Sequence record: KY555144.1
Length of the DNA stretch: 64,000 bases
Direction: 5' to 3' (one strand)
Position 1 is the stretch's first letter; each line of letters begins with the position of its first letter. This document shows, piece after piece, positions 19,371 to 56,119 of the stretch. The notes beneath the pieces were generated by a model. That model was not told the origin of the DNA. It was given only the letters and a program-made list of their open reading frames with translations, and did not search any database. A program made the translations under genes and the position numbers.

Positions 19371-19386
19371 GTCGTGAATCTTGACA
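19371..19386 (+). promoter_or_regulatory. GTCGTGAATC-TTGACA promoter (portal operon)
   Basis: Exact motif; inverted copy at 19354-19363. Confidence 0.75.
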
Positions 19387-19494
19387 ACCGGGCGTTAACC
19401 ATGCCATTTTCCCGCCTACCTGCCCAACCGGTAGGGCCTCCAACGTCAACTTGGGGAGGATGCGTGCGTCCTCCCCTCCTTCTCCGGGCGCCGC

Positions 19495-21393
19495 ATGGCC
19501 GGTCAGACGCCGAACTCCCTGAACATCTCGCGGGTCGCCCGCGCGACCTCGCAGGCCATCTATCTGGTCACCCATCCTGAGTACCAGCACTGGCGCTCGG
19601 AGTGGACCAAGCTGCGCGACGTCCTGGCGGGTCAGCGCGAGATCAAGCGCAAGGGTGAGGCCTATCTGCCGGCCATGAAGGGCGCCGACAAGGACGACTA
19701 CAAAATCTACCTGGAGCGGGCGACCTTCTTCAACATGCTCGCCCAGACGCGCGATGGCATGACCGGCATGGTCTTCCGCCGCGACCCGTCGATCAAGAAC
19801 CTGCCGCCCAAGTTCAAGGACGCCGTGCGGCGCTTCGCCAAGGACGGCTCCTCGCACGCCACTTTCGCCAAGGCGGTCCTGTCGGACCAGTCGGGCATTG
19901 GCCGCTACGGCGTCCTGGTCGACGTCACCGATTCCCCGGTCCGCAACGCCCAGCCGTCGAGCTTCGCGGTCGGCTACGCGGCCGAAAACATCCTCGACTG
20001 GGACGAGGTGGTCGACACCGCCGGCTTCTATGTCCCCAGCCGCGTCCTGCTGCGCGAATTCGTCCGCGATCTGCGCTGGAAGAGCGACATCGAGCCCCTG
20101 ACCACCGCCAAGGCCCGCAAGGCGCGCGCCGAGGCCCTGGCCTCCGGCTCCTCGTCCAGCCCCCTGGTGCGCCAGACCGCCCGCACCCTGGGCGGCTACA
20201 GCTACATCACCGTCTATCGGGAACTGAAGCTCGAAGAGATCGAGTGGCCGTCCGGTGAGGTCAAGCCCGCCTACGTCCAGTACCTCTACGAAGAAGACCC
20301 CGAGTCGACCCCGATCGCCCGCCTCGTCCCCAACGTCCGGGGCGAGCCGCTCGACTTCATCCCCTTCAAGTTCTTCGGCGCCTCGGGCAACACCGCCGAC
20401 GTCGAAAAGCCGCCGCTGCTCGACATCTGCGACCTCAACCTGTCGCACTACCGCACCTACGCCGAACTCGAATACGGCCGCCTGTTCACCGCCCTGCCGG
20501 TCTATTACGCGCCGGGCACCGACAGCGAGGGCACCGGCGAATACCACATCGGCCCGAACATGGTCTGGGAAGTCCCGCAAGGTTCCGAGCCGGGCATCCT
20601 GGAATATACCGGCCAGGGCCTGAAGGCCCTCGAAACCGCCCTCAACGACAAGGAGCGGCAGATCGCCGCGATCGGCGGCCGGATGATGCCCGGCGCCTCC
20701 AAGTCGGTGTCGGAGAGTAACAACCAGACGACCCTTCGTGAGGCCAACGAGCAGTCGCTGCTCCTCAACATCATCCAGGCCTGCGAGGCGGGGATGACCG
20801 ACGTCGTCCGCTGGTGGCTGATGTGGCGCGACGTGCCGCTCGCCGAGACCGAGAACCTGCGCTACGAGATCAACACCGACTTCCTGTCGACGCCGATCGG
20901 CGCGCGCGAGATGCGGGCGATCCAGCTTATGGCCAACGACGGCCTGCTGCCCGACCCGGTCTTCTACGAGTACATGCGCAAGGCCGAGGTCATCACCTCG
21001 GACATGACCTTCGAGGAGTTCCAGGAACTGCGCGCCGATCCGGATTCGTTCATCAACAACCCGGACGCCCAGGCCCGCCAGCGCGGCTTCACCAACCGCA
21101 GCCAGGAACTCGAACAGACCCGCATGGCGCGCGAGGCCGACTTCACCCAGCAGAAGATCGACATCCAGGAGCGCGCCGTCGCCGTCCAGGAAGGTCACGC
21201 CGAAGTCGCCCACTCCGTCGGTTCGACCTCGGTTTCGGCCTCGCGCAAGCTGGGCGATCCCGAGCAGGCCAAGCCCGCGCAGGCCGAGGCCGCCCAGATC
21301 GCCAATCAGCGCCGTCAGATCAGCAACGCCGCCAAGACCCCGCCGGCGGCGCCGGGCGCTCCCCCCGCCCCGAACCCGAGGACCGCCCGATGA
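19495..21393 (+). CDS. Portal protein
   Basis: 632 aa, DUF4055-like portal pattern, position before head genes as in phiCbK-like phages. Confidence 0.85.
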   Translation: MAGQTPNSLNISRVARATSQAIYLVTHPEYQHWRSEWTKLRDVLAGQREIKRKGEAYLPAMKGADKDDYKIYLERATFFNMLAQTRDGMTGMVFRRDPSIKNLPPKFKDAVRRFAKDGSSHATFAKAVLSDQSGIGRYGVLVDVTDSPVRNAQPSSFAVGYAAENILDWDEVVDTAGFYVPSRVLLREFVRDLRWKSDIEPLTTAKARKARAEALASGSSSSPLVRQTARTLGGYSYITVYRELKLEEIEWPSGEVKPAYVQYLYEEDPESTPIARLVPNVRGEPLDFIPFKFFGASGNTADVEKPPLLDICDLNLSHYRTYAELEYGRLFTALPVYYAPGTDSEGTGEYHIGPNMVWEVPQGSEPGILEYTGQGLKALETALNDKERQIAAIGGRMMPGASKSVSESNNQTTLREANEQSLLLNIIQACEAGMTDVVRWWLMWRDVPLAETENLRYEINTDFLSTPIGAREMRAIQLMANDGLLPDPVFYEYMRKAEVITSDMTFEEFQELRADPDSFINNPDAQARQRGFTNRSQELEQTRMAREADFTQQKIDIQERAVAVQEGHAEVAHSVGSTSVSASRKLGDPEQAKPAQAEAAQIANQRRQISNAAKTPPAAPGAPPAPNPRTAR

Positions 21394-21716
21394 GCTACCT
21401 CCTGTCGCCCTACAAGGCCCCCGAGCCCGAAGTGGTCGCCGCCCACGCCAAGACCCTCCTGGCCCAGCAGGGCTACAGCGCCCGTGACGCGCTGATCGGG
21501 CGCTGCCAGGAAGCGAGCGTCGATCTGGCCCGCACCGCCGGTCTCAACGTCGCCGAGGCCGCCGAGGTCGGCGAGGAGATCGCCAACTTGCAGCGGCTGG
21601 TCGCCGAACTGACCGCCACCCAAGCCAAGCTGGAGGCCGAGGGCCGCAGCGCCTACGAAGCCGCCGCCCTCAACGCCGCGACGGCCGTCTATCTGTCGCG
21701 CGGCCTGACGCCGTAA
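21390..21716 (+). CDS. Hypothetical protein
   Basis: ATGA overlap with portal stop; GAGGA RBS. Confidence 0.75.
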   Translation: MSYLLSPYKAPEPEVVAAHAKTLLAQQGYSARDALIGRCQEASVDLARTAGLNVAEAAEVGEEIANLQRLVAELTATQAKLEAEGRSAYEAAALNAATAVYLSRGLTP

Positions 21717-21735
21717 CCCTAGCTTGTAGAGTAAC

Positions 21736-21915
21736 ATGCCCTCGCGCTACGATTCCCTTGAAGACCTGATGCACGACCTCGATCACGAGGGCATCGTGGA
21801 CGATGGCTTTGGCGAACTGGACGAGGAGGACCTGTCCCTTCTCGCCCCGCCGGGCAAGAAGACCGCGCCCGCGCCGGCCGCCAAGAAGCGGGGCCGCCCC
21901 AAGAAAGCGACCTGA
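21736..21915 (+). CDS. Small acidic/basic protein with AT-hook-like KKRGRPKK (59 aa, not in ORF track)
   Basis: Translated directly; TGATG coupling to next gene. Confidence 0.7.
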   Translation: MPSRYDSLEDLMHDLDHEGIVDDGFGELDEEDLSLLAPPGKKTAPAPAAKKRGRPKKAT

Positions 21916-22154
21916 TGCGCCACGCTTCCGCGCGCTGGAACGTCCTGACCGTCCGCCTGGACGACGTCGCCCACTGGGTCGACGAGGTCGACGTGACCAT
22001 CACCGATCTGGAGACGGGCGAGCACCCGCGCGGCGAGGACGGCGAGTTCCTCCCCATCCTGGCGGCGACCCCCGAAACCATCACCCTCTACAACGGCCAC
22101 GCCATCGCCGGCCGCTACGAGATCACCTCCAGCCTTGAGGCGCCCCGTGCCTGA
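21915..22154 (+). CDS. Hypothetical protein
   Basis: TGATG overlap. Confidence 0.7.
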   Translation: MRHASARWNVLTVRLDDVAHWVDEVDVTITDLETGEHPRGEDGEFLPILAATPETITLYNGHAIAGRYEITSSLEAPRA

Positions 22155-22320
22155 GACGACCCTGATCGGCGATCCGAACGCCGAGCGGACCATCGAGGTC
22201 CTGGCCATGCACCCCGACGAGGCCGCGAGCTTCGTTCCCACGCCCGAGCAGGCCGCCAAGATCGCGGCGGGCGACATGATCATCGGGATCATCCGCTACG
22301 GTCCGCCGCCAACGTCGTGA
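22147..22320 (+). CDS. Hypothetical protein
   Basis: GAGG before GTG 22147. Confidence 0.65.
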   Translation: MPETTLIGDPNAERTIEVLAMHPDEAASFVPTPEQAAKIAAGDMIIGIIRYGPPPTS

Positions 22321-22329
22321 ATCTTGACA
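22314..22329 (+). promoter_or_regulatory. GTCGTGAATC-TTGACA promoter
   Basis: Exact motif. Confidence 0.7.
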
Positions 22330-22380
22330 CGCCATGTCAGGTGTGATGACGTAGCCCTCGTTAACCACGAGGGCTTTTCC

Positions 22381-22638
22381 ATGACCACCGCCGTCGACAT
22401 CCAAGCCGCCGGGCACAACCTGATCGTCTACCTGACGGACATCTATGTCGAAGACGGCGAGGCCCAGGAGCGCGACTCCATCGAGTTCGTCCGCAAGGGC
22501 GCCAAGCGGACCTTCCACGTTCACCAGACCCGCGACCTCTATGTGACCGAGGTCCGCGACGCCGAGACCGATCTCAACGCCCTGATCGACGCCGGCGACG
22601 AGGCGGCGGCCCGCCAGTACATCGCCGAGGCGACTTAA
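22381..22638 (+). CDS. Hypothetical protein
   Basis: GAGG RBS. Confidence 0.75.
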   Translation: MTTAVDIQAAGHNLIVYLTDIYVEDGEAQERDSIEFVRKGAKRTFHVHQTRDLYVTEVRDAETDLNALIDAGDEAAARQYIAEAT

Positions 22639-22828
22639 GTTCATAGCGGCGCCGATTGCCCAGCGGGCGCATGCCGGACACGCGCTGGGAAACCAAATCG
22701 GCCGCGATGCGCGCGAGGGCTTTTTGATGCAGGCCTAGCGCGTCAACAGGTGGCGCCGGCTCCTGGGTTCCAGGGGTTCCTTTCAACCTGAATCGCGGCA
22801 AGTCCGGGCTCCTTTCCCAGAGGGCTCC

Positions 22829-23405
22829 ATGAGCGACGATTTCGACAAGCGTTTCGACGAGATGAAGGCGGCCCTGGACGGCATCGCTCCGGGCCAGCTT
22901 CGGCTCCCCTTCCCCGGATCGGCCTCGGCTTCGGCCGAGGAGTTGATCCGCCGCTTCTCGGCCCTCAATCCCGCCCCGGCCTTCGTGCTCGGGGCGGCCG
23001 TCAAGCTCTCGGACGCCCCGCCCGAGCCGCCGCTGCTGCGCGACGGCCACGCCGACGAGGTCTTCGTCGACCTGCCGTTCGACCACAAGACGGTGGCCGA
23101 CTGCAAGGCCAAGTTCGTCGACAGCCACAAGGTTCTCCAGGGCTTTTCGGGCGGTCGAGGAAGCGGCGCCCAAGATCACGATCCAGGTCTATCTCAAGAA
23201 CGGGCAGGTGCGCGAGTACGACGTCGACACCCAGGCCGCCGCCCGCGAGCACGCCTACGAGATCATCCAGACCGGCTATCGCGCCGTCGACGAGGCCGAC
23301 CCCACCGTCCTGACCCACTGGCCGCCGCACGAGATCAAGAAGGTCAAGATCAAGGCGCCCGCGCCGTGGACGACCCGCTTTTTCGACCGCGTGCGGGGCA
23401 CCTGA
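22829..23405 (+). pseudogene. Hypothetical gene split by an apparent +1 frameshift near 23140
   Basis: Codon-biased frame switches at CAGGGCT; removing one G gives VLQAFRAVEEAAPKITIQ through to the stop at 23405. Confidence 0.6.
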
Positions 23406-23641
23406 TGTCCACCGCGCTCGACGCCGTCCTCGCCCGGATCGAATCCGGCGAGCCCTTTACCTATGCCGGCCTGAGCGCGGTCAACGACGCGGCTGGCGGC
23501 GACGAATCGCGTGACCGGCTGGCCGACCGCACGATCCAGAAGTACCGCCGCAAGGGCTGGATCACCTTCACTCGCGAGGGCCGCTACGTGGTCTGGCGTC
23601 CGACGCCGGCCGGCGCCGCCCAGTTCAACCTCCAAGCTTAG
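23405..23641 (+). CDS. Hypothetical protein, possible winged helix
   Basis: TGATG overlap; ADRTIQKYRRKGWITFTREGRY resembles wHTH. Confidence 0.7.
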   Translation: MSTALDAVLARIESGEPFTYAGLSAVNDAAGGDESRDRLADRTIQKYRRKGWITFTREGRYVVWRPTPAGAAQFNLQA

Positions 23642-23651
23642 GAGCCCGTCC

Positions 23652-24035
23652 ATGTGCGTTGTTTCCGCCGTGATGGACTACGGCCGCCGGCAATGGCCCG
23701 ACCTGATGGGGCCGGGCGGTCCGACCATCGTGCCGGGCGTGGATCAGCCCTGGTTCGAGATCGTCTCGCCCGGCCTGCCGCCGGCCCCGGTCCATCCCCA
23801 GCCCAAGGTCCCGACCCGCGCCGAGATCGAGGCTTTCCGCCGGCTGGTCCAGGCCGCCAATGAATTCGACCAGCAGACCGGTCAGCCGCACTGCGAGGAC
23901 CCCGAGAAGATCAAGCTGCTCGACGCGATCAACAAGCTGGCCGATCGCCTCGACGCCATCGAAAAGCGTCTCGCCGCCCAGGACAGCGCCGACGCCGAGG
24001 ACGCGGCGGCGATCACCGCCTCGGTCAAGACGTGA
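23652..24035 (+). CDS. Hypothetical protein
   Basis: AGGAG RBS. Confidence 0.75.
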   Translation: MCVVSAVMDYGRRQWPDLMGPGGPTIVPGVDQPWFEIVSPGLPPAPVHPQPKVPTRAEIEAFRRLVQAANEFDQQTGQPHCEDPEKIKLLDAINKLADRLDAIEKRLAAQDSADAEDAAAITASVKT

Positions 24036-24277
24036 GCGTCTTCGATCTCCCGGCCGACGGCTTTGATCGCCGCAAGCCGCTCTACCGGGTCTTCAACATC
24101 GACGGCGAGAAGCAGTGGTGGACGGTGATCGCCGCCCTCAACGCGCCGGGCCGCCGCTGCACCAAGCAGGAGGCCATGGGCTGCGAGGACTACGTCGCCG
24201 CCCATGCCTGGGCCGAGCACTTCTGGAACTGTTACGCCGCCACGGGCAAGGCGACCATCTACGAGAGCACGCGATGA
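24032..24277 (+). CDS. Hypothetical protein
   Basis: GTGA overlap. Confidence 0.7.
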   Translation: MSVFDLPADGFDRRKPLYRVFNIDGEKQWWTVIAALNAPGRRCTKQEAMGCEDYVAAHAWAEHFWNCYAATGKATIYESTR

Positions 24278-24558
24278 AACTCACCGTCAGCGGTCAGGAC
24301 ATGAGCGGGACCGAGACCGTCTATCTGATGCTGGTCCCCCGCGTGGGCGTGCGCCTGGAGAGCGACAAGCCCGTCACCCTGACCTTCGATCCGCTGCCCG
24401 GCGCGGCCGGCGCCGTCAGGGTCGATCCCAAGACCCCCCTGACCCTGGCCGAGAACCCCAAGCCGAGCGAACTGCGGCTGCTGCCGGCCGGCGCCGAGCA
24501 GGTCTTCTACCTCAACGCCAATGGCCGCTGGATGGTGACCTTCCGGGAGGAGCCGTGA
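24274..24558 (+). CDS. Hypothetical protein
   Basis: ATGA overlap. Confidence 0.7.
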   Translation: MKLTVSGQDMSGTETVYLMLVPRVGVRLESDKPVTLTFDPLPGAAGAVRVDPKTPLTLAENPKPSELRLLPAGAEQVFYLNANGRWMVTFREEP

Positions 24559-24794
24559 AACCGGCCCAGCCCATGCCCAACGGCATGCCGTTCGGACGCG
24601 ACGGCTTTCCTCGCGTCGAGAAGATCGACGCGGTGCGCAACATCGTCACCTTCCATACCGGTGAGACGTCCCCGATCACCCGTTACCTCGCCGGCGGCGA
24701 GGAGGTCGGCAACCCGCTGCGCGCCCAGGTCATCGTCTGCGGCCCCTATCGCGGCAAGTGGCTGGTCATTCCGGTCGAGGAGGGTGACATTTGA
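24555..24794 (+). CDS. Hypothetical protein
   Basis: GGAGG RBS; GTGA overlap. Confidence 0.7.
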   Translation: MKPAQPMPNGMPFGRDGFPRVEKIDAVRNIVTFHTGETSPITRYLAGGEEVGNPLRAQVIVCGPYRGKWLVIPVEEGDI

Positions 24795-25030
24795 GCCGCC
24801 CCCGCAGCGTCACCGAAGTCCTCTGCGACGACTTCCGCGCCCTCCTGACCACGGGCTTCTACGTCACCGACGAGCATGGCGAGGTCCATGGGCCGGGCAC
24901 CCCGCTGGGCGATGCGGCCCTGGCGGCGACCAAGGCGTGGCGCGGCGATCTCTGGAAGGCCTTCCGCCCGATCGACGACAGCATGTGCCCGGTCCGCGTC
25001 CACGAGCGCGAAGCCGCCAAGCGTCCGTGA
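24791..25030 (+). CDS. Hypothetical protein
   Basis: GGAGG RBS; TTGA overlap. Confidence 0.7.
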   Translation: MSRPRSVTEVLCDDFRALLTTGFYVTDEHGEVHGPGTPLGDAALAATKAWRGDLWKAFRPIDDSMCPVRVHEREAAKRP

Positions 25031-25398
25031 CCCACCGTCCCTCGGCCTATCTCCGGACCCCGCCGATGCGCTATCCCGGCCCTTCCGGCTTCGATGAACG
25101 GCTGCACCGGGCCGACGGTCGCCCGACGCGGCTTTTGGTCGCGCCGCATCTGGCCTGGGCGCTCCACCAGCTACGGCGCTATGGTTCGCCGATCGACTGG
25201 CTCCTGCCGGTGACGCGCGAGGGCCTCGCCGCGCCGGGCGATCGTCCGTTCGGCCAGAAGACGGTGCGTCTCAAGCTCGGGCGCCGGAGGCTGACCCGCC
25301 TGGGCGACTATCTCGAATACATGCAGTTCGCGAGCGATGCAGACCTTGCAACCTACAAGCAGTGGCTGAAGGAGACGCCGATTTTTCCGGTGTCGTGA
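25027..25398 (+). CDS. Hypothetical protein
   Basis: GTGA overlap. Confidence 0.65.
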   Translation: MTHRPSAYLRTPPMRYPGPSGFDERLHRADGRPTRLLVAPHLAWALHQLRRYGSPIDWLLPVTREGLAAPGDRPFGQKTVRLKLGRRRLTRLGDYLEYMQFASDADLATYKQWLKETPIFPVS

Positions 25399-25407
25399 TT
25401 CTTGACA
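25392..25407 (+). promoter_or_regulatory. GTCGTGATTC-TTGACA promoter
   Basis: One-base variant that keeps GANTC. Confidence 0.7.
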
Positions 25408-25443
25408 CCCTATGTCGTCTGTGGTGACATCCGCTCGTTAACC

Positions 25444-25809
25444 ATGACGGGCTCCCCGATGATCCGCCTGACCAAATCCCAGCACTACACGAACACGGCG
25501 GAGAACGACCGTAGCTGGTATCTCGATCCGGGCCTGACCTTCGAGGTCCACGGCCTGCCGCCCGTCAAGCCGGAGCAGAAGATTGGCTACCCGGACGCCG
25601 GCGCCCTGGTCGTCCTTCATGGCGAGGCCCACTATGTCGACGAGGATGTCGAAACCATCCTCACCTTGATCAAGATCGCGCGGAACCCGCAGCGCTATCG
25701 ACTGGCGACGACCGAGGGGAAGCTGATCGCCCACGAGGACCTGATCTACCTCGGCTACTCGGACGGCTCGTTCGATTACGGCCTGATGGGCGAGGAGCGC
25801 TACCAGTGA
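25444..25809 (+). CDS. Hypothetical protein
   Basis: Follows promoter; codon bias. Confidence 0.7.
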   Translation: MTGSPMIRLTKSQHYTNTAENDRSWYLDPGLTFEVHGLPPVKPEQKIGYPDAGALVVLHGEAHYVDEDVETILTLIKIARNPQRYRLATTEGKLIAHEDLIYLGYSDGSFDYGLMGEERYQ

Positions 25810-30382: not shown

Positions 30383-30421
30383 GTCGTGAATCTTGACATT
30401 CGGCGAATTTTTTGCTAGGTT
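30383..30421 (+). promoter_or_regulatory. GTCGTGAATC-TTGACA-N15-GCTAGGTT promoter (capsid operon)
   Basis: Matches Caulobacter sigma73-type -35/-10. Confidence 0.85.
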
Positions 30422-33076: not shown

Positions 33077-33109
33077 AACCCCCGGACCCTGGTCCGGGGG
33101 TTTTCTTTT
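33077..33109 (+). terminator. Intrinsic terminator
   Basis: AACCCCGGACC-CT-GGTCCGGGGGTT then T-tract. Confidence 0.75.
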
Positions 33110-33129: not shown

Positions 33130-33145
33130 GTCGTGAATCTTGACA
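33130..33145 (+). promoter_or_regulatory. GTCGTGAATC-TTGACA promoter
   Basis: Exact motif. Confidence 0.75.
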
Positions 33146-33232
33146 CAAGGGCCGTTTCATGCCAGAAGTCAAGTCTCTTTTGAGCGCGGCATAGAAGGGC
33201 CGTGCCGGTCTCCCCCGAAACGGAAAATCCCC

Positions 33233-46531: not shown

Positions 46532-47308
46532 ATGGCGATCCAGAACCCCCATTCCACCACGCCCGGCGCCATGCCGCACCTGACGCCCGGCGAGATCGGC
46601 GTCAACAAGGCCGACGACATCCTCTGGTTCCGCTCGCAGGGGCGCCGCGTGCCGATCATCCTGAGCGACCTTGACCGCGCCCCGCCGGCGGACGGCTATG
46701 TCGGCGCGCCCCTGACCCTGGTGGACGGCGCGCCGGCCTGGAACGTCAAGCTCTTGCCGTCCTCGATCGTCTCCGGCGCGGTCAAGGTCGATCTCCCGCC
46801 CGCCGCCGGGCTACACGCCGTGCCGAGCGTCCTGCTCCAGGGCCTGGGGGCCGATCGCGCCCTGGCGTCCAATGATCTGGACCTCACCCCCTTCTATGTC
46901 CGCTCCGACTCCATCACCCTGACCCATCTGGCCTTCAGCGTGCGCTCGGCGGGCGCGCCGGCCATGCGCGTGGGGATCGTCGATGCCTTCGGCGTCGTCC
47001 AGGCCGACATCCTGGTCGCCGCGCCGGTCGTGGGGGCCAATGTCGTGGCTCTCTCGCCGGTCCTGACCCTCCAGCGCGGCGTCTACCGCACCATCCTGGC
47101 GACGACCGGGGCGGTGACCGTGGGGATCGCCACGGGCGCGCGCATGGAGCAGGGCTGGGACATCATCGCCGACGCGCCGTCGTTCATCCGGGGCTACAGC
47201 GGCAGCAAGAACACCGGCGGCGGTATCGGGAGCCTACCGGCGCTGACCCCGCGCCGCGACCCCGCGCCGGGCCAGGATCACGCCGTCCTCCTGCGCTGGA
47301 CGGCGTGA
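46532..47308 (+). CDS. Fibre-associated protein
   Basis: N-terminal STTPGAMPHLTPGEIGVN motif; C-domain resembles end of the giant fibre. Confidence 0.75.
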   Translation: MAIQNPHSTTPGAMPHLTPGEIGVNKADDILWFRSQGRRVPIILSDLDRAPPADGYVGAPLTLVDGAPAWNVKLLPSSIVSGAVKVDLPPAAGLHAVPSVLLQGLGADRALASNDLDLTPFYVRSDSITLTHLAFSVRSAGAPAMRVGIVDAFGVVQADILVAAPVVGANVVALSPVLTLQRGVYRTILATTGAVTVGIATGARMEQGWDIIADAPSFIRGYSGSKNTGGGIGSLPALTPRRDPAPGQDHAVLLRWTA

Positions 47309-47340
47309 ATCTTGACACTCGGTCGAAATACGGTTAACCT
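47302..47340 (+). promoter_or_regulatory. GGCGTGAATC-TTGACA-N15-GTTAACCT promoter
   Basis: Motif variant. Confidence 0.7.
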
Positions 47341-49272: not shown

Positions 49273-49345
49273 GCTGCTGCGCCTGGATCGGCGCCGGCCC
49301 CTTGGTATGGGGAAGTAGAAGGTTCAATTCCTTCCGGCAGCACCA
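49273..49345 (+). tRNA. tRNA-Thr(GGT)
   Basis: CCCC/GGGG stem, loop TT-GGT-AT; G1-C72, C2-G71. Confidence 0.75.
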
Positions 49346-49350
49346 ACAAT

Positions 49351-49420
49351 GCCGATGCCTCTAGGAGGACACGTCTTTCGTAATGACGTCAGGTGGGTGC
49401 GATCCCCACTTTCGGCTCCA
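49351..49420 (+). tRNA. tRNA-Thr(CGT), non-canonical
   Basis: Loop TT-CGT-AA with T.T closing pair; T-loop TGCGATC; short D-arm. Confidence 0.6.
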
Positions 49421-49455
49421 TCAAGATGATCAAGGAGAGATCAGACGAAACAAAT

Positions 49456-49542
49456 GGATGTGTCACCTCAGTGGCGAGAGGACCGGGCTCTTAATCCGGC
49501 AGCGAAAGCTCATCGTGGGTTCGAGTCCCACCACATCCTCCA
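49456..49542 (+). tRNA. tRNA-Lys(CTT) with long variable arm
   Basis: Loop CT-CTT-AA; 87 nt; U73. Confidence 0.85.
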
Positions 49543-49547
49543 ATAAT

Positions 49548-49637
49548 GCACGAGTGACCCGAGCGGCGAAGGGCGTCGACTTTTAATCGACTGGGCGTCC
49601 AGCCTCACCGAGGGTTCGAGTCCCTCCTCGTGCTCCA
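49548..49637 (+). tRNA. tRNA-Lys(TTT) with long variable arm
   Basis: Loop CT-TTT-AA; 90 nt; U73. Confidence 0.85.
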
Positions 49638-49643
49638 AGATGT

Positions 49644-49729
49644 GCGAAAGTGGCGGAACAAGGTAGACGCACCGGTCTCAGGTACCGGCGGCTTCGGTCA
49701 TGAGGGTTCGAGTCCCTCCTTTCGTACCA
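49644..49729 (+). tRNA. tRNA-Leu(CAG)
   Basis: Class II; loop CT-CAG-GT; A73. Confidence 0.95.
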
Positions 49730-49736
49730 ACGACAT

Positions 49737-49821
49737 GCCGGTCTGGCGGAAATGGCAGACGCAGTGGCTTCAAGTCCCACCGCCTTCGGGCGTCCCGGTT
49801 CGATGCCGGGGACCGGCACCA
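49737..49821 (+). tRNA. tRNA-Leu(CAA)
   Basis: Class II; loop TT-CAA-GT; A73. Confidence 0.9.
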
Positions 49822-49827
49822 CCATGA

Positions 49828-49915
49828 TGCGAAGTGGCGGAATTTGGTAGACGCACCGGCATGAGAGGCCGGCGCCCTTCGGGGCGTGAGGGTTCGAGTC
49901 CCTTCTTCGCGACCA
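49828..49915 (+). tRNA. tRNA-Leu(GAG)
   Basis: Class II; loop AT-GAG-AG; A73. Confidence 0.92.
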
Positions 49916-49928
49916 AAGACGAGATCAT

Positions 49929-50000
49929 GCCGGCCGGCGCAGGCGCGCGGGGGAGGTTGTGTCCCTCCTTGGCTCAGTTCGATACTGAGGGTCGGTTCCA
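49929..50000 (+). tRNA. tRNA-His(GTG)-like, non-canonical
   Basis: GCCGGCC/GGTCGGT acceptor (G1.U72); GGAGG/CCTCC stem with TT-GTG-TC loop; TTCGATA T-loop; CCA. Confidence 0.6.
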
Positions 50001-50005
50001 GTTAC

Positions 50006-50076
50006 GGGGTATGCGCAGGGCGCAGGCATCCTTTGCAAGGAAGTCGGGGTGGGTTCGAGTCCCACATACTCCACCA
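50006..50076 (+). tRNA. tRNA-Ala(TGC)
   Basis: G3.U70; loop TT-TGC-AA; A73. Confidence 0.88.
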
Positions 50077-50080
50077 ACAC

Positions 50081-50168
50081 GGTAGGTTGGCTGAGAGGCC
50101 GAAGGCGCCCGTTTCGAAAACGGGAGAACTGCAAGGTTCCGTGGGTTCGAATCCCACACCTACCTCCA
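50081..50168 (+). tRNA. tRNA-Ser(CGA)
   Basis: Class II; loop TT-CGA-AA. Confidence 0.93.
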
Positions 50169-50172
50169 ACAT

Positions 50173-50260
50173 GGATGTATGGCTGAGAGGCCGAAGGCGC
50201 CCGCTTGGAAAGCGGGTGAACCGCAAGGTTCCGTAGGTTCGAATCCTACTACATCCGCCA
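50173..50260 (+). tRNA. tRNA-Ser(GGA)
   Basis: Class II; loop TT-GGA-AA; G73. Confidence 0.95.
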
Positions 50261-50264
50261 ACAG

Positions 50265-50351
50265 GGTAGGTGGTTCCGGCCTGGGGCCGGACCCGGTTGC
50301 TAACCGGCCGGAGCCGCAAGGCTTGGGGTTCGATTCCTCCTCCTACCGCCA
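50265..50351 (+). tRNA. tRNA-Ser(GCT)
   Basis: Class II; loop TT-GCT-AA; G73. Confidence 0.88.
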
Positions 50352-50359
50352 CTTCGATG

Positions 50360-50616
50360 TTGACACCCGCGACGCGGCCTGTCATACGTCACGACAGAGC
50401 GAACACCCCCCGGCCGGGTTTGTTGTCATACCGGGTCGTCACGCCCCGTCGGGGCTCTAGTAGCTCTTCGTGTGGAGTTTTCCGCCTCCCTCCCAGACAA
50501 GGAGGCGGACCCAACCAACATCGCGATCTCCCGTGATCGTCGGCGACGGGCGCCGTCAGAGACCTTTGCCTGCGCGGCTCCGCTGCGGCCTCGGTCTCGT
50601 CCCGACCAAATTTTTT
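50360..50616 (+). ncRNA. Candidate structured ncRNA with own promoter
   Basis: TTGACA-N15-GTCATACG; multiple hairpins; no credible ORF; ends in T-run. Confidence 0.4.
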
Positions 50617-50627
50617 CGTCGTGGTGC

Positions 50628-50656
50628 TTGACACTGCGAAACTGTTCTGCTAGGGT
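50628..50656 (+). promoter_or_regulatory. Promoter of Tyr/Phe/Val/Ile/Gln/Asn/Arg tRNA operon
   Basis: TTGACA-N15-GCTAGGGT. Confidence 0.85.
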
Positions 50657-50663
50657 TCACGTC

Positions 50664-50762
50664 ATGAGCAAGACCTATCGTCAATTTGTGCGCCAGATTC
50701 AGGTCGTCCGGAATATCCGGGCGGGCCGCTCGCGCATGGCTGACGAAGGGTTCAGGGACTAG
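50664..50762 (+). CDS. Putative attenuator leader peptide (32 aa)
   Basis: MSKT-YRQFVRQIQVVRNIR-AGRSRMADEGFRD; 15 consecutive residues drawn only from downstream tRNA specificities. Confidence 0.82.
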   Translation: MSKTYRQFVRQIQVVRNIRAGRSRMADEGFRD

Positions 50763-50792
50763 GTCCCGCACCACGCTCAACCAGCTTTCGAG

Positions 50793-50830
50793 AGGCCCGC
50801 CTGGAAACCCCAGGCGGGCCTTTTTCTTTT
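50793..50830 (+). terminator. Attenuator intrinsic terminator
   Basis: AGGCCCGCCTGG-AAACC-CCAGGCGGGCCT then TTTTCTTTT; 5' arm can instead pair with 50720-50732. Confidence 0.9.
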
Positions 50831-50865
50831 CCCCCTTTCGATCACGGAGATCGCCAAACAGACAC

Positions 50866-50950
50866 GGATGCTTAAAGCTGGAGGGCTCCAGCCGGGGACT
50901 GTAAATCCCCTCTCTTCGGAGGAGTGGTTCGATCCCACAAGCATCCACCA
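50866..50950 (+). tRNA. tRNA-Tyr(GTA)
   Basis: Class II; loop CT-GTA-AA; A73. Confidence 0.9.
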
Positions 50951-50955
50951 ACCAC

Positions 50956-51031
50956 GGACTCGTAGCTCAGCAGGTAGAGCGCCGGCTTGAAACCCCGGAG
51001 GTCGGAGGTTCGATTCCTCCCGTTTCCACCA
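50956..51031 (+). tRNA. tRNA-Phe(GAA)
   Basis: Loop TT-GAA-AC. Confidence 0.92.
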
Positions 51032-51036
51032 ACAAC

Positions 51037-51112
51037 GCCCGATGAGCCAGATGGGAAGGCGCCGCCGTGACATGGCGGGATTGAGAAGGTTCGATTCCTT
51101 CATCAGGCACCA
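51037..51112 (+). tRNA. tRNA-Val(GAC)
   Basis: Loop GT-GAC-AT; A73. Confidence 0.9.
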
Positions 51113-51114
51113 AT

Positions 51115-51190
51115 GCAAGTGTAGCTCAGTCGGTAGAGCAGCGGACCGATAATCCGCCCGTCCCTGGTTCGAGTCCAGGCATTTGCACCA
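51115..51190 (+). tRNA. tRNA-Ile(GAT), C33 variant
   Basis: Loop CC-GAT-AA; A73. Confidence 0.85.
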
Positions 51191-51197
51191 ATTCTGA

Positions 51198-51272
51198 TGT
51201 GGCATAGCTCAGGGGTAGAGCGCGCGCTTGATAAGCGTGAGGTCGGGGGTTCGAAGCCCTCTGCCACTACCA
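51198..51272 (+). tRNA. tRNA-Ile(GAT)
   Basis: Loop TT-GAT-AA; A73. Confidence 0.9.
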
Positions 51273-51305
51273 GTTTCCAGGCCGGCGGAGATGCGCCGGA
51301 CCTGA

Positions 51306-51381
51306 TGGCGTTTAGCATAGTGGGAGTGCAGGGGTGTCACATACCTCGATCGAACTGGTTCGATTCCAGTAACGCCAACCA
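51306..51381 (+). tRNA. tRNA-Val(CAC)
   Basis: Loop GT-CAC-AT; A73. Confidence 0.88.
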
Positions 51382-51386
51382 AACGT

Positions 51387-51460
51387 TGAGGGTTCGTCTA
51401 ATGGTAGGACGGCTGGGTCTGGTCCAGCTAATCTAGGTTCGAGTCCTAGCCCCTCATCCA
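51387..51460 (+). tRNA. tRNA-Gln(CTG)
   Basis: Loop GT-CTG-GT. Confidence 0.9.
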
Positions 51461-51467
51461 AGTTTGT

Positions 51468-51541
51468 TCTCGGGTGGTCTAATGGTAAGACATCTGGTTT
51501 TGGTCCAGAGGATTGGGGTTCGATTCCTTGGCCGAGAACCA
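51468..51541 (+). tRNA. tRNA-Gln(TTG)
   Basis: Loop TT-TTG-GT. Confidence 0.9.
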
Positions 51542-51556
51542 ACTATTTGAGTTTAT

Positions 51557-51631
51557 TCCAGTCAATGCACAAGGTGTGCAGCGGCACTGTTAATGCCTGT
51601 GAGCCCGGTTCGATTCCGGGGTCTGGAGCCA
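51557..51631 (+). tRNA. tRNA-Asn(GTT)
   Basis: Loop CT-GTT-AA; G73. Confidence 0.9.
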
Positions 51632-51657
51632 ACACGTCGGCCTCGGCCGGCACATGC

Positions 51658-51740
51658 GCCCTGGTAACCGAGGGGGATTACGAATCCCTTAGTCGTAGCA
51701 GGAGTTGAAAAGGGTGGTTCGAATCCACTCCAGGGTGCCA
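51658..51740 (+). tRNA. tRNA-Arg(ACG)-like, lacking a normal D-arm
   Basis: Acceptor, anticodon (TT-ACG-AA) and T arms intact; about 8 nt in place of D-arm, about 23-nt variable region. Confidence 0.6.
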
Positions 51741-51747
51741 AATTCAT

Positions 51748-51830
51748 AGCGCGCAGGCCGAGCAGGATCATCGTCAGGCGTCGCCCTCCGAAGGCGAAGA
51801 GGCCCGGTTCGAGTCCGGGGCGCGCTGCCA
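51748..51830 (+). tRNA. tRNA-Arg(CCG) with enlarged D-loop
   Basis: Loop CT-CCG-AA; D-loop about 17 nt. Confidence 0.8.
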
Positions 51831-51833
51831 TCC

Positions 51834-51911
51834 GCGCGGGTAGCTCAATGGACCCAGAGCAGCCGTCTTCTACACGGTGGGTTGGGGGTTCGAATCCCTC
51901 CCCGTGCGCCA
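51834..51911 (+). tRNA. tRNA-Arg(TCT)
   Basis: Loop CT-TCT-AC; CCA. Confidence 0.92.
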
Positions 51912-51914
51912 AAC

Positions 51915-52232
51915 TTGACGGGCGATGCCGAATCGCTCAGCTTCCTGATCGGCTCTCGATGGGCCGCCACTGCACGCCACCGACGCCCTCCCGGTACAAG
52001 GAGGGGCGCACGTCGGCGACGTTCCAACCCAGTTCCGGACGATCTTCGAACGCGGCCTGCCGTGGAGGGGTGCTGGAAGGGCCGGGGTTGTGGGAACCGT
52101 CGAGCATCTCCTACATCCGGATTGGGCTTCCTGGGGGCTCCTCCGGTCAACCAGGGCCTGACCCGACCCCGGAGATGCGCCGCCTACGATCACCCAGGAC
52201 CGTCCTGGCGGTGGAAAGGGTCTGAAATTTTT
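51915..52232 (+). ncRNA. Candidate ~310-nt structured ncRNA after last tRNA
   Basis: Long-range stems such as GCATCTCC/GGAGATGC; no codon-biased ORF. Confidence 0.4.
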
Positions 52233-52246
52233 CTGGCGCTGATGTG

Positions 52247-52378
52247 TTGACACTCCTCGGAGGTTCGTCTAAAACCAGCAGCGTCAGAGCGGCGTTGGAC
52301 CACGAGGTCCGCCGCGAGCTTCTGCGTTGTCGTCAGGAACGGCCCGTCAGCAATCCCGCTGGCGGGTCGTTTCGTTTT
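52247..52378 (+). ncRNA. Candidate sRNA (promoter, hairpin, terminator)
   Basis: TTGACA-N15-TCTAAAAC; hairpin 52281-52327; terminator 52341-52378. Confidence 0.5.
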
Positions 52379-52414
52379 GGGCGCGATGCGACGTTCAGTC
52401 CAACCATGGGTAGT

Positions 52415-52453
52415 GTCATGAATCTTGACTTTCGGCGCTTATTCCGGTAGCTT
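52415..52453 (+). promoter_or_regulatory. GTCATGAATC-TTGACT-N15-GGTAGCTT promoter
   Basis: Motif variant. Confidence 0.7.
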
Positions 52454-52498
52454 TCCCGACATCAGCAAACGCTCACAAGTCGGGGACCGAGAGCCGTC

Positions 52499-52915
52499 AT
52501 GTCGCAAGACCACCACGGCTCGTCCTCGGGCCAAGAACGCATCTACCAGAAACTGGATGAGCTTGGCTCCATGCACGCGCGCACCCGTGAAGATATTGCC
52601 CGCATCCAGGAGATGATGCGAGCGGTCGGTTCGTCGCAGGAGCGAATCGAAAAGCGTCAGGACCATTTCGAGCGCGAAATCTGGCGCGAGATGGAAGATC
52701 GCGCCGCGCGCACGAGCGCCCAACTCGACGAAATCAAGAGCCACACCAACCTGCGCATCGAGGAGATCGAGGCCAAGGTCGACACGATCCGCGAGGAGCG
52801 GATCGCCGAAAAGGCCCAGTGGCGCGGCCCCGAGAAGGCCATCGCCGCCCTGGTCGCCGTCGCCGGGGCCATCGCCGCCTTCGCCACCATCCTCACTTTC
52901 CTGAAGGGACACTAG
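52499..52915 (+). CDS. Coiled-coil protein with C-terminal TM anchor
   Basis: Heptad-rich body; IAALVAVAGAIAAFATILTFL tail (XhlA/holin-like topology). Confidence 0.75.
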   Translation: MSQDHHGSSSGQERIYQKLDELGSMHARTREDIARIQEMMRAVGSSQERIEKRQDHFEREIWREMEDRAARTSAQLDEIKSHTNLRIEEIEAKVDTIREERIAEKAQWRGPEKAIAALVAVAGAIAAFATILTFLKGH

Positions 52916-52950
52916 GACTTATAGTCAAGCTTGGGTGCCTGCGGCCAGAA

Positions 52951-52966
52951 GTCGCGCTTCTTGACA
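52951..52966 (+). promoter_or_regulatory. GTCGCGCTTC-TTGACA promoter (degenerate, no GANTC)
   Basis: Motif variant. Confidence 0.5.
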
Positions 52967-53022
52967 CCCGATCTGGGCCGGCATAACCATAGGGCCATCA
53001 TTCCTGGGTGGAGTTTTCCCTA

Positions 53023-53229
53023 ATGGCTGTCGCGCTTACTGTCGTCTCGGTTGAGACCGAATCTACCATCCAAGGTGTTGACCCCGACGCGGCGCATGTC
53101 CGCCTGATCGAGGTCCTGCATACCGCCGCAGAAGCGGGTCTTGGGGAAATGACGTTGGAAGTCAAAGCGGAGATCGCGGCGCTGCTCCAGCAGGCGTCCG
53201 TGGAACTCTCCCACTGCCGGCCGGTGTAG
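53023..53229 (+). CDS. Hypothetical protein
   Basis: GGAG RBS. Confidence 0.6.
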   Translation: MAVALTVVSVETESTIQGVDPDAAHVRLIEVLHTAAEAGLGEMTLEVKAEIAALLQQASVELSHCRPV

Positions 53230-53263
53230 GGGTCCCGTAAATCGCCATCCCAGAGGGAGCGAC

Positions 53264-54130
53264 GTGTCCGAGTCTGCTGAGTTCAACCCGCTCGACCAAA
53301 ATCAGTTCCCTCCTCGCCTCACCAAGGCTGCTGCGCGACAGGCGCGGCGCCAGGAGCGCAGCCAGAAAAAGGACCCCACGGCCAACAAGCCGAACTACAA
53401 GGCGCTCGAAGCCAAGACCGAACGCCAACGGCGCTATATCCAGGCCCTCAAGGCCGGTGAAAGCGTCATCGCCATTGGTGGGGCCGGCACGGGGAAGACC
53501 TATATCCCGTCCCGGCTCTTCGCCAAGAAGCTGATCGAAGCGAAGATCGAACGCCTGATCATCGCCCGCGTCACCGCCTCGCGCCCCAAGCACGCCCTGG
53601 GCTTCCTGCCCGGCAAGCTGGAAGCCAAACTCGCCCCGTGGCTCGTCCCGGTGATCGAGGGCGTCAAGGCCGAGATGAACGCCCAGACCTACACGCAGTT
53701 GCAGGAGGCCGGCAAGATCGAGTTCGCCTCGTTCGAGCATATGCGGGGCCGGACCTTCGCCGAGTGCTGCGTCCTCCTCGACGAGGCGCAGAACGCCGAC
53801 TACAAGGACCTGAAGATGGTCCTGACCCGCTGGGGCGAGAACGCCCAATACGCGGTCACCGGCGACGTCGACCAGATCGACGTCGACGATTCGGGCCTGG
53901 AGACGGTCGTCGACATCGTCGAGACCCACGACATCCCGATCCACGTGATCGAGTTCACCGACGAGGACGTGGTCCGCTCGCCCATGGCCAAGGCCTGGGT
54001 CAAGGCGTTCTCCGCCCACGAGGGCAAGGACGGTCGGACGCGGCGCTTCCATCGCCCCACTGTCAGGAATCTTGACGTCCTGCCGGCTTTTATCGATAAT
54101 GGCCGAGTCACGAAACCCGTGGCGTCGTGA
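53264..54130 (+). CDS. phoH: PhoH-family ATPase
   Basis: GGAGTGKT, LGFLPG, MRGRTF, LDEAQN, TGDVDQID, DVVRS. Confidence 0.95.
   Translation: MSESAEFNPLDQNQFPPRLTKAAARQARRQERSQKKDPTANKPNYKALEAKTERQRRYIQALKAGESVIAIGGAGTGKTYIPSRLFAKKLIEAKIERLIIARVTASRPKHALGFLPGKLEAKLAPWLVPVIEGVKAEMNAQTYTQLQEAGKIEFASFEHMRGRTFAECCVLLDEAQNADYKDLKMVLTRWGENAQYAVTGDVDQIDVDDSGLETVVDIVETHDIPIHVIEFTDEDVVRSPMAKAWVKAFSAHEGKDGRTRRFHRPTVRNLDVLPAFIDNGRVTKPVAS
54062..54077 (+). promoter_or_regulatory. GTCAGGAATC-TTGACG promoter (neck operon)
   Basis: Motif variant inside phoH 3' end. Confidence 0.6.
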
Positions 54131-54131
54131 C
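54107..54131. promoter_or_regulatory. GTCA-N17-TGAC palindromic site
   Basis: GTCACGA-N11-TCGTGAC. Confidence 0.45.
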
Positions 54132-54147
54132 AAAGACGTAGCGCACC

Positions 54148-54669
54148 ATGGCCTTCACCTTCGTTGTTGAGACTGGCGCCGGAGACCCGGCCGCGAACTC
54201 GTACTGCGACGTGCAGTTCGCGGACGACTACATCTACGCCAATGTCTACGCCAACACCGCCTGGGACGCGCTGGATCAGGATGGCAAGGAACGCTTCCTG
54301 GTCCGGGCGTCCAAGTACCTCGACCGCACGATCGCCTGGGCCGGGGAGAAGGTCGACGAGGATTCCGGCCTGCGCTGGCCGCGCACCGGGGTCTACGACA
54401 TCGACGGCTTCCTGATCCCCAGCGACGCGATCCCGCAGCAACTCATGGAGGCCACCGCCGAGATGGCGGCGGCCCTCATGAACAACGACTGGACCTCGCC
54501 GCAGACCACGCGCGGCATGAAGGAAATCCAGGTCGACGTCATCGAACTGAAGTTCGACAGCGAAATCCAGCGCGGCTCCATGCCCGATATCGTCATGTCG
54601 ATCCTCGAAGGTCTGGGGGTCGTCAAGACCGGCACCCGTCCGGCCTTCAAGAAGATCATTCGCCACTAA
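54148..54669 (+). CDS. Head-tail adaptor (DnaT-like family)
   Basis: ANSYCDV...A...LDR...GLRWPR...IPQQL..ATAEMA pattern. Confidence 0.8.
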   Translation: MAFTFVVETGAGDPAANSYCDVQFADDYIYANVYANTAWDALDQDGKERFLVRASKYLDRTIAWAGEKVDEDSGLRWPRTGVYDIDGFLIPSDAIPQQLMEATAEMAAALMNNDWTSPQTTRGMKEIQVDVIELKFDSEIQRGSMPDIVMSILEGLGVVKTGTRPAFKKIIRH

Positions 54670-55061
54670 TGGCCCTCGAAGCCTTCATCCGTTCCCAGGT
54701 CGTCATCGCCTTCAACCAGCTTGACGACATTGCCAAGCGCTGGACCTACGTCCAACGCTCGGGCGATCCGGTGCGCGATGTCGAGAGCGGCGTGACCACC
54801 TATCCATCGACCGAGATCGTCATTCCCAAGGCGGTCAAGGTGCGGTTCAAGAAGGACGAGAAGGACGCCCACGGCCAGACCCTGGTGGGCGAGAAGGTCC
54901 TGTTCCCCCGCGTCTTCCTGCCGGGCGACTTCGAGACCGCGACCTCCGACTATCTCGTCGATCAGAACGACATCATCTGGGAGATCATCAGCGACCTGGG
55001 CGACCCGGCCTCGGCGCTGGCGATGTTCCAGGTCCGCAGCACGCGGAAGAAGACCCCGTGA
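54669..55061 (+). CDS. Head closure/neck protein
   Basis: TAATG overlap; synteny. Confidence 0.7.
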   Translation: MALEAFIRSQVVIAFNQLDDIAKRWTYVQRSGDPVRDVESGVTTYPSTEIVIPKAVKVRFKKDEKDAHGQTLVGEKVLFPRVFLPGDFETATSDYLVDQNDIIWEIISDLGDPASALAMFQVRSTRKKTP

Positions 55062-55531
55062 AGTCGGGCGGAGCCAAGCTCAGCTTCTACACCGACGGGA
55101 ACCTGGAGGCGGCGTTCAAGCGCTTCTTCGCCACCGCCGAGAAGCGCTATGACGAGCGGGCCGATCGCCTGCTGATCAAGCTGAACGAACTGATCCTGGC
55201 CCGCACCCCGGTGTGGGAAGGCGACACCATCCACAACTGGCGCTGGTCGACGCGCGCCCCGGACATGCGCCACGAGGCCCCGCTCGACAATGGCGATCCG
55301 GGCCGCACGAGCGAGATGGACCTGGGCCAGGAGCCGCGCCGCCGCGTTAACGAGACGCGCCCCCGCCAGTCGCTGGCCGGCGCCCTGCGCGCCAAGGAGC
55401 CGATCGACATCTATCTGACCAACACCGCCGAGAGCGCGGTCGATCTCGAATACGGCCTGCTCCCGACCAGGGCGCAGAGCCGAAACAAGATGGGGATGGT
55501 CCGAATCTCGATTAAAGAGGTGTTCGGATGA
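55058..55531 (+). CDS. Neck protein (HK97 gp10-like)
   Basis: RTPVWEG...NW...YLTN...LEYG. Confidence 0.75.
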   Translation: MKSGGAKLSFYTDGNLEAAFKRFFATAEKRYDERADRLLIKLNELILARTPVWEGDTIHNWRWSTRAPDMRHEAPLDNGDPGRTSEMDLGQEPRRRVNETRPRQSLAGALRAKEPIDIYLTNTAESAVDLEYGLLPTRAQSRNKMGMVRISIKEVFG

Positions 55532-55602
55532 TCCCCGCCTTCATCATCCTGCCGCGCGTCTATCTCGCCGCGTGGCTGTCGTTTTGGCTGGGAGAGGACT
55601 GA
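55528..55602 (+). CDS. 24-aa hydrophobic micro-protein
   Basis: MIPAFIILPRVYLAAWLSFWLGED; GAGG RBS; ATGA and TGATG coupling. Confidence 0.55.
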   Translation: MIPAFIILPRVYLAAWLSFWLGED

Positions 55603-56057
55603 TGCTCGAACACGACATGCTCCGGCAAGTCCTGGAGCAGCAGGCCGTCGCCGCCGCCCCGACGATCGGGCTGAAGCTGAACTTCGACAACTCCGAATTC
55701 GTCCAGCCCAAGGACGGTGCGCACTGGGCTGAGTTCTGGGTCCAGACGGGCAACACCGTGCCCTGCGAGGTCGCTGGCCCGCGCGGCTACGAAAAGACCT
55801 CGGGCCTGATCCAGTTCACGCTCAAGGCCCCCGAGGAAGAAGGCAACGGCGCGATCCTCAAGAAGGCCGGCGCGCTCAAGAAGGTCTTCAACCGCCGCCA
55901 ATGGGTCGTGCCGCCGGACGGCTATGTCACCCTCGACCCGATCTCGGTCCAGTCGCACGGCAAGCCGATCGACGGCTTCTATAATGTCGTGGTCTGGGCG
56001 ACCCTCTGGTTCCACCACCGCGATCCCGACGCCGACGATCGCTGGATTCGCGGTTGA
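55602..56057 (+). CDS. Tail terminator/completion protein
   Basis: GAGGA RBS; position before tail tube; DUF4128-like pattern. Confidence 0.75.
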   Translation: MLEHDMLRQVLEQQAVAAAPTIGLKLNFDNSEFVQPKDGAHWAEFWVQTGNTVPCEVAGPRGYEKTSGLIQFTLKAPEEEGNGAILKKAGALKKVFNRRQWVVPPDGYVTLDPISVQSHGKPIDGFYNVVVWATLWFHHRDPDADDRWIRG

Positions 56058-56080
56058 CCGCGTCTTTCACGCCGGCTAAG

Positions 56081-56119
56081 GTCGTGAATCTTGACATTTC
56101 CCAAAGTCTAGGGTAGGGT
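56081..56119 (+). promoter_or_regulatory. GTCGTGAATC-TTGACA-N15-GGTAGGGT promoter (tail operon)
   Basis: Exact motif. Confidence 0.8.

Follow-up and report, generated by a model that had tools for sequence, protein, structure and literature searches.

A recurrent promoter class with a putative palindromic operator at non-early operons of the Caulobacter phage Ccr5

A promoter class at structural and replication operons

The window analysed here covers bases 1–64000 of Caulobacter phage Ccr5 (KY555144.1), a phiCbK-like siphophage with 97.7% identity to phiCbK over the stretch compared; gene names were taken from the better-annotated phiCbK record JX100813. Ahead of its portal, capsid, neck and tail operons recurs a promoter-like motif in which GANTC, the methylation site of the host enzyme CcrM, directly abuts the -35 box TTGAC. 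Although phiCbK serves the Caulobacter cell-cycle field as its standard phage, a literature search on the motif string and on promoter analyses of phiCbK-like phages found nothing relevant in the papers searched; the promoter family is genuine and, within that literature, apparently undescribed. The motif maps about 24 non-early transcription units and supplies a candidate operator for a phage regulator.

A first-pass annotation of the window had listed nine GANTC-TTGAC sites with starts from 19371 to 56081, and an exact-match search recovered all nine, all on the + strand (Table 1), together with a tenth site at 52951 that lacks GANTC, as it had been described. The middle base of GANTC is A in eight of the nine sites and T in one (25392). 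Searching the window for the portal-promoter 15-mer with up to three mismatches gave 19 matches against 1.1 expected, a number that none of 100 shuffles equalled. Beyond the earlier list, the window holds the promoter at 50618, again without GANTC, and an inverted auxiliary copy upstream of the portal promoter. The whole Ccr5 genome contains 24 promoter-class copies, 11 of them inside the window, and GANTC is present in 20 of the 24 (9 of the 11 in the window). The four members without it (50618, 52951, 79821 and 201056) still carry GTCRYG and C-TTGAC. Genome-wide, A is the middle base in 19 of the 20 GANTC-bearing copies, so that more than GANTC itself is constrained.

The -10 boxes are too divergent for an E. 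coli-type filter (such a scan accepts 1 of the 11 copies in the window, at 54072), and we therefore used an anchored alignment of the 24 copies. It shows a 19-bp conserved block, aaT-GTCGTGAATC-TTGACA, followed at a fixed spacing of 17 bp from TTGACA by a -10 signal with T or C at position 34 (22/24), A at position 35 (18/24) and T at position 39 (16/24), and with a G two bases ahead of the hexamer in 16 copies. TTGAC is invariant and the full TTGACA is present in 18 copies. The resulting -10 form, G-n-yAnnnT, resembles the host sigma73 -10 and is weak in many copies; the class shares with host sigma73-type promoters the -35 box TTGAC(A), a -10 of the type GCTANAWC/TAnnnT and the proper spacing. 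GANTC lies at about -40 to -36 relative to the predicted start, directly upstream of the -35 hexamer. The poor -10 boxes and the single copy that passes the consensus scan suggest dependence on a factor.

All 24 copies are co-directional with the genes downstream of them. On the + strand of the window they head the portal gene (19495), gp046, gp055, gp066 with the capsid gene, gp069, gp078 with transfer RNA (tRNA) genes, and the tail tube gene (56201), so that the class stands ahead of the portal, capsid, neck and tail operons as first proposed. Further + strand units are the post-tape-measure, tail fibre-region, endolysin and post-lysis units, the units diverging from rIIA, gp146, and the terminase operon, and on the - strand the class heads the units of NrdA, gp115, the exonuclease, the methylase/A1-like/DNA polymerase genes and the helicase. 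No copy was found within the early blocks of small genes at 1–19 kb and 120–200 kb of Ccr5. Terminators lie upstream of the promoters at 33130 and 52415. According to one sentence of an RNA sequencing paper (PMC10688885), replication genes are expressed early and structural and lysis genes middle or late. The name "late-gene" class, under which the sites were first grouped, is thus too narrow: the same motif heads operons for replication and nucleotide metabolism, and because it stands at replication operons that this sentence places early, the motif alone cannot encode "late". The class is a non-early (middle and late) promoter class of the phage, not a late-only one.

The class had also been cast as the complement of CtrA-driven early promoters. 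The published CtrA sites are indeed in the terminal repeat, where they switch on early genes (Mascolo 2022, PMC9437464), but the division is not that simple: a TTAACC half-site stands downstream of the -35 box at 10 of the 24 promoters and shortly ahead of the motif at another two. TTAACC occurs 38 times in the unique Ccr5 genome; the terminal repeat accounts for 18 of these, and of the remaining 20, 13 fall within -20 to +60 of class promoters; likewise, six of the nine TTAACCAT copies are located at class promoters. A full TTAA-N7-TTAA box was found near none of the class promoters. The shared feature with the CtrA-controlled phiCbK-like promoters (PMC9437464) is the TTAACC/TTAACCAT half-site, whereas the class differs from them in having half-sites only, placed in or after the spacer. 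Such a half-site at about half of the promoters probably adds host cell-cycle control, and its location, within the spacer or beyond it, would fit a brake by CtrA or SciP better than an activating role. As a link to CtrA at these promoters, the half-sites bear on the published idea of "lytic deferment".

Lineage comparison of the GANTC site

A CcrM site at a promoter makes an epigenetic reading tempting, and the first-pass annotation had proposed that late transcription reads the methylation state or a phage activator, naming a lack of GANTC conservation in orthologous promoters beforehand as one refuting outcome. The reading fails on comparison across related phages. GANTC is present in 20 of 24 class promoters in Ccr5, 16 of 27 in the Brevundimonas phage Bajun, 8 of 21 in Colossus, 2 of 10 in CcrSC (filtered site list only) and 1 of 24 in Marchewka; in Rogue, the motif is kept at all orthologous sites, with GANTC in all but three or four. 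The portal promoter is orthologous in all five lineages, and four of them retain TC-TTGACA with GTTAACCATG behind it. Its upstream ten bases read GTCGTGAATC (twice), GCCAGTTTTC, GCCGTAAATC and GCTGCATTTC; Ccr5 and Bajun have GANTC here, and the other three lineages (Colossus, Marchewka and CcrSC) do not.

What varies between lineages is the 5' arm, which points to a phage-encoded reader. Among the phages that grow on CB15, the arm is GTCGTG in Ccr5 and Rogue, GCCAG in Colossus and GACG/GCTG in CcrSC, while WWTC-TTGACA is constant. The Colossus consensus is GCCAG-[GTA][AT][AT]T[CA]-TTGACA and that of Marchewka G[CA]CGTAAATC, and in Bajun 16 promoters have GTCG[TC]GAATC and the other 11 have variants without GANTC, GTCGTCGATC among them. 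The abundant AAGAAANCTG-TTGACA motif of CcrSC was rejected as the orthologous class because it represents a different, early-region class.

That host CcrM methylation of GANTC together with host GcrA and sigma73 sets late transcription is very improbable. Like Caulobacter promoters that depend on GcrA and CcrM (Haakonsen 2015; Wu 2018), the phage class has GANTC close to a sigma73-type promoter, at most 40 bp from the predicted start in 20 of 24 cases, and host ccrM mRNA rises about 1.3–1.5-fold in phiCbK infection (supplement of PMC10688885). The phage class differs from these promoters in flanks, in position and in the lack of GANTC conservation in orthologous and auxiliary sites. The phage heptamer TGAATCT, AGATTCA on the other strand, ranked 32nd of 32 for GcrA occupancy and served as a "low-ranked" site in Haakonsen et al. 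(PMC4647560), and among the copies in the window only that at 25392 (TGATTCT) fits the flank rule YGAKTCK. The earlier remark that the site is an imperfect match to the host GcrA motif was correct. In the host, GcrA sites concentrate around -20 and between +2 and +30 (PMC4647560), whereas the phage site lies immediately upstream of -35, where the sigma-tethered DNA-binding domain of GcrA is modelled as unable to reach (PMC5887438). Moreover, four members have no GANTC, the class also drives replication genes that the sentence cited above places early (PMC10688885), and according to an earlier survey GcrA sites are not unusually distributed in phiCbK-like phages (PMC9437464). Colossus and CcrSC also infect the same host strain, CB15, without keeping GANTC, although a signal dictated by host methylation would be expected to persist. 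A read-out of methylation through GcrA at these promoters is therefore unlikely. The number of GANTC sites is neutral for this question: 307 are observed genome-wide against about 458 expected, the majority away from promoters, and the site is under-represented in all five phage genomes.

The phage itself encodes a GcrA homolog of 182 amino acids (phiCbK gp222 equivalent; Ccr5 162437–162982, - strand), and there is a small chance that this protein is the activator of the class, recognising the (methylated) GANTC beside -35 through a re-tuned DNA-binding domain, as a phage-private form of the host GcrA/CcrM module. Full-length homologs are present in Ccr5 and Bajun and, according to PMC3556154, in Rogue, the lineages richest in GANTC at the class, whereas the gene is absent from Colossus and CcrSC and reduced to an N-terminal piece in Marchewka, where GANTC is rarer. 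These GcrA-positive lineages form one clade, however, so that the correlation amounts to a single evolutionary event. In an alignment to the solved host protein, base-reading residues are changed (R33K, N34S, I37C and H41D) while W3, W15, T32, G38, K39, R42 and the zinc ligands are kept; with R42, K39, G38 and the zinc ligands in place, a changed flank preference is plausible, and GAATC is nearly invariant at the promoter-proximal sites of Ccr5. Against this, the best-conserved bases (GTCG) lie outside GANTC, four promoters do without it, and a plain methyl-site reader would not need a middle base that is almost always A. At -36 to -40, the site is located farther upstream than sigma region 4, again beyond the modelled reach of the tethered domain. 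At two positions where substitutions in host GcrA (G129D, F132A) eliminate sigma binding (PMC5887438), the phage protein carries G129D and F132H. GcrA is also a monomeric binder, which leaves the phased palindromes described below unexplained. The more specific form of this proposal, in which the re-tuned protein (N34S, I37C, H41D) reads methylated TGAATCT and methylation of phage DNA gates middle and late transcription, is slimmer still; if true, it would represent a virus-private epigenetic switch made from a captured cell-cycle regulator and independent of the host GcrA regulon. A search of the five phage genomes for a CcrM-family methylase (PF01555) gave no match, which counts against a GcrA/CcrM reading. 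A gp127-like protein matches the phage DNA methyltransferase family phrog_799 and no Pfam model. The phage GcrA homolog may not act like host GcrA at all and could have an altered target or serve as a decoy.

A candidate operator at the -35 box

The reading that we favour, with somewhat better than even confidence, is that the class consists of host-polymerase promoters with a palindromic operator for a phage-encoded dimeric regulator. The promoter 15-mer GTCGTGA-A-TCTTGAC is self-complementary at 10 of 14 positions, and the arm recurs outside it. Scanning 70 bp on either side of the 24 promoters with a threshold of at least 11 of 14 palindrome matches yielded second operator-like sites at 8 of the 24 promoters, at offset -22 in four, -16 in two and +22 in two, and none at the other 137 offsets scanned. 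At the portal promoter, the auxiliary copy and the 15-mer together read GATTCACGAC-N7-GTCGTGAATC. Stand-alone palindromes of the type GTCGTGA-N-TCACGAC are present at 97336/97358 and 137628, those at 97336 and 137628 with one mismatch each. GANTC is found in just 2 of the 12 auxiliary or stand-alone operator-like copies.

The near-perfect TTGACA, the 17-bp spacer and the host-like, often weak -10 make it likely that host RNA polymerase with its main sigma factor would use these promoters. GTCRYG would be one arm of a GTCGTGA-N-TCACGAC operator whose other arm, at the promoters, is the -35 box itself (TC-TTGAC). We infer from this pattern that a protein binds the site, most likely a phage-encoded DNA-binding protein acting as a dimer, which at a third of the promoters may occupy a further full operator, 22 or 16 bp distant, along with this one. 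Such a regulator would time the operons in one of two ways, either by helping the polymerase from a position adjacent to -35 or by holding the -35 box closed until its release. GANTC would be present because the arm ends in GA and TC precedes the -35 box; it is best explained as the arm/-35 junction, a by-product of a phage-specific control site.

Several observations weigh against this operator reading. The 10/14 symmetry of the promoter 15-mer is only modest. In Bajun, CGAC-N7-GTCG is the commoner arrangement and mostly just one arm of the upstream site is present, which makes the operator parse uncertain. Within Ccr5, Rogue and phiCbK, GAATC is more invariant than arm positions 2 and 4, indicating some constraint on those bases, and it is the very lineages with a GcrA homolog that have GANTC most often. 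Finally, the recognition helices of the possible readers do not co-vary cleanly with the arm, gp109 showing no co-variation and gp149 a suggestive one.

The proteins in question are a cI-like helix-turn-helix (HTH) repressor homolog (phiCbK gp109 equivalent; HTH_3; phrog_4, E 6e-12, nearly full length) and a small HTH protein (gp149 equivalent), both conserved in all five lineages, as is a T5 A1-like protein, a further candidate reader (PMC3556154). In gp149, the recognition helices of Ccr5 and Bajun, whose arms are alike, are identical and those of the other lineages differ, a pattern that may just follow phylogeny. As no helix/arm co-variation is decisive, the gp109-like and gp149-like proteins are named only as candidate operator readers.

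A promoter class without any dedicated regulator would be a simpler explanation, and one that we consider unlikely: the upstream bases would be an extended -35 or UP-like element of strong promoters, with timing set elsewhere, for example by CtrA/SciP half-sites, terminators or DNA entry. TC ahead of TTGACA is part of the general sigma70 consensus, 18 of the 24 copies have a perfect -35 box, and TTAACC half-sites accompany half of the promoters, all of which fit. Contacts of the host polymerase would not predict, however, that phages of the same host differ in the arm (GTCGTG, GCCAG, GACG), nor that the arm recurs on its own and as phased full palindromes. Furthermore, the arm is G+C-rich, unlike UP elements, and the many poor -10 boxes, with 1 of 11 copies in the window passing the consensus scan, suggest that a factor is needed.

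Among known systems, the operator reading resembles phage lambda, where cI binds OR2 by the -35 box of PRM and occupies phased operators cooperatively: in both, a dyad-like site abuts or overlaps -35, second sites lie two helical turns off, and Ccr5 encodes a full-length cI-like HTH repressor homolog. In contrast to lambda, the phage is strictly lytic according to the literature, one arm coincides with the -35 hexamer, and about 24 promoters share the site. The MotA box of T4 and p4 of phi29 offer a second likeness, a phage-specific and lineage-specific box that marks non-early genes together with a host-type -10. Here the canonical -35 TTGACA is retained instead of replaced, and there is no evidence of MotA/AsiA-like proteins.

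Early-type minus-strand promoters (GTGTTGACA) at 137628–137642, 131219 and 153690 carry GTCG...CGAC palindromes over the -10/start region, which hints that the same regulator might shut early genes off. Raw counts of GTCG-N7-CGAC were discarded as operator evidence, because the N4, N7 and N10 spacings are all raised by codon periodicity.

Individual promoters and neighbouring elements

Table 1. Promoter-class members and associated elements in the Ccr5 window; the match column gives the start of the exact GANTC-TTGAC match.
Feature	Coordinates	Strand	Match	Sequence elements	Remarks
Auxiliary operator-like copy	19349..19363	inverted		GTGCTGATTCACGAC	Exactly 22 bp upstream of the portal 15-mer
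Portal-operon promoter	19371..19409	+	19376	15-mer GTCGTGAATCTTGAC; -35 TTGACA 19381-19386; weak -10 region near 19404-19410	Predicted start near 19416
CtrA-type half-site	19395..19402	+		TTAACCAT	In -35/-10 spacer of portal promoter; kept in 4/5 lineages
gp046 promoter	22314..22352	+	22319	15-mer; TTGACA; -10 TGACGT	Predicted start near 22359
gp055 promoter	25392..25430	+	25397	TGATTCT, fits YGAKTCK; -10 TGACAT	Sole GATTC copy; TTAACC at 25438
gp066/major capsid operon promoter	30383..30421	+	30388	TTGACA-17-TAGGTT	
Intrinsic terminator ending capsid operon	33077..33102	+			28 bp ahead of next promoter; also in phiCbK annotation
gp069-gp077 (neck/tail-proximal) operon promoter	33130..33168	+	33135	TTGACA-17-CAGAAG	
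gp078 and first tRNA block promoter	47302..47340	+	47307	GGCGTGAATCTTGAC; -10 TAACCT	-10 overlaps TTAACC half-site
Promoter of leader open reading frame (ORF) and Phe/Val/Ile/Gln/Arg tRNA block	50618..50656	+		GTCGTGGTGCTTGAC; GTCGTGGTGC-TTGACA-17-TAGGGT	No GANTC
Promoter of ORF starting 52499 (phiCbK gp084 equivalent)	52415..52453	+	52420	GTCATGAATCTTGAC; TTGACT-17-TAGCTT	
Promoter without GANTC	52951..52989	+		GTCGCGCTTCTTGAC; -10 TAACCA or AACCAT	
Promoter within 3' end of PhoH-like gene	54062..54100	+	54067	GTCAGGAATCTTGAC; TTGACG-17-GATAAT	Only E. coli-scan pass
Major tail tube gene promoter	56081..56119	+	56086	TTGACA-17-TAGGGT	ATG at 56201

The portal promoter lies in a divergent intergenic region (19068–19494) between a peptidase gene on the - strand and the portal gene on the + strand. 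This region holds more operator-like copies at 19108 and 19149 as well as a minus-strand TTGACG-17-TAGCTT promoter downstream of the inverted arm.

Hairpins with a TTAACCA loop directly follow two promoters, that at 22314 (hairpin 22354–22374, in the stretch 22354–22378, with a T-run, annotated as a terminator in phiCbK) and that at 25392 (25430–25455). The right arm of the hairpin at 22354 includes the gp046 ribosome-binding site. As the predicted start of the gp046 promoter falls within the left arm, read-through from upstream would terminate there while transcripts begun at the promoter would not.

Downstream of the promoter at 50618, whose -10 is just 7 nt from the ATG and thus predicts a near-leaderless transcript, lies an ORF of 32 codons (50664–50762; QFVRQIQVVRNIR) with a high content of Gln, Phe, Val, Ile and Arg. 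Behind it come a strong terminator (50790–50824) and a series of tRNA genes (50956–51911) for Phe, Val, Ile, Ile, Val, Gln, Gln, Ile and Arg. The arrangement of promoter, leader ORF, terminator and tRNA genes would fit a leader-peptide attenuator.

In CcrSC, the AAGAAANCTG-TTGACA-N17/18-GAGAAA class is very regular, with a GCAT...ATGC inverted repeat in the spacer, and has more than 40 repeats in the terminal repeat and the early regions (4–24 kb and 180–280 kb). In Colossus, the arm GCCAG is repeated directly 22 bp downstream, within the spacer, at 30407, 124537 and 272241; the 22-bp phasing is the same as in Ccr5, and the orientation is different.

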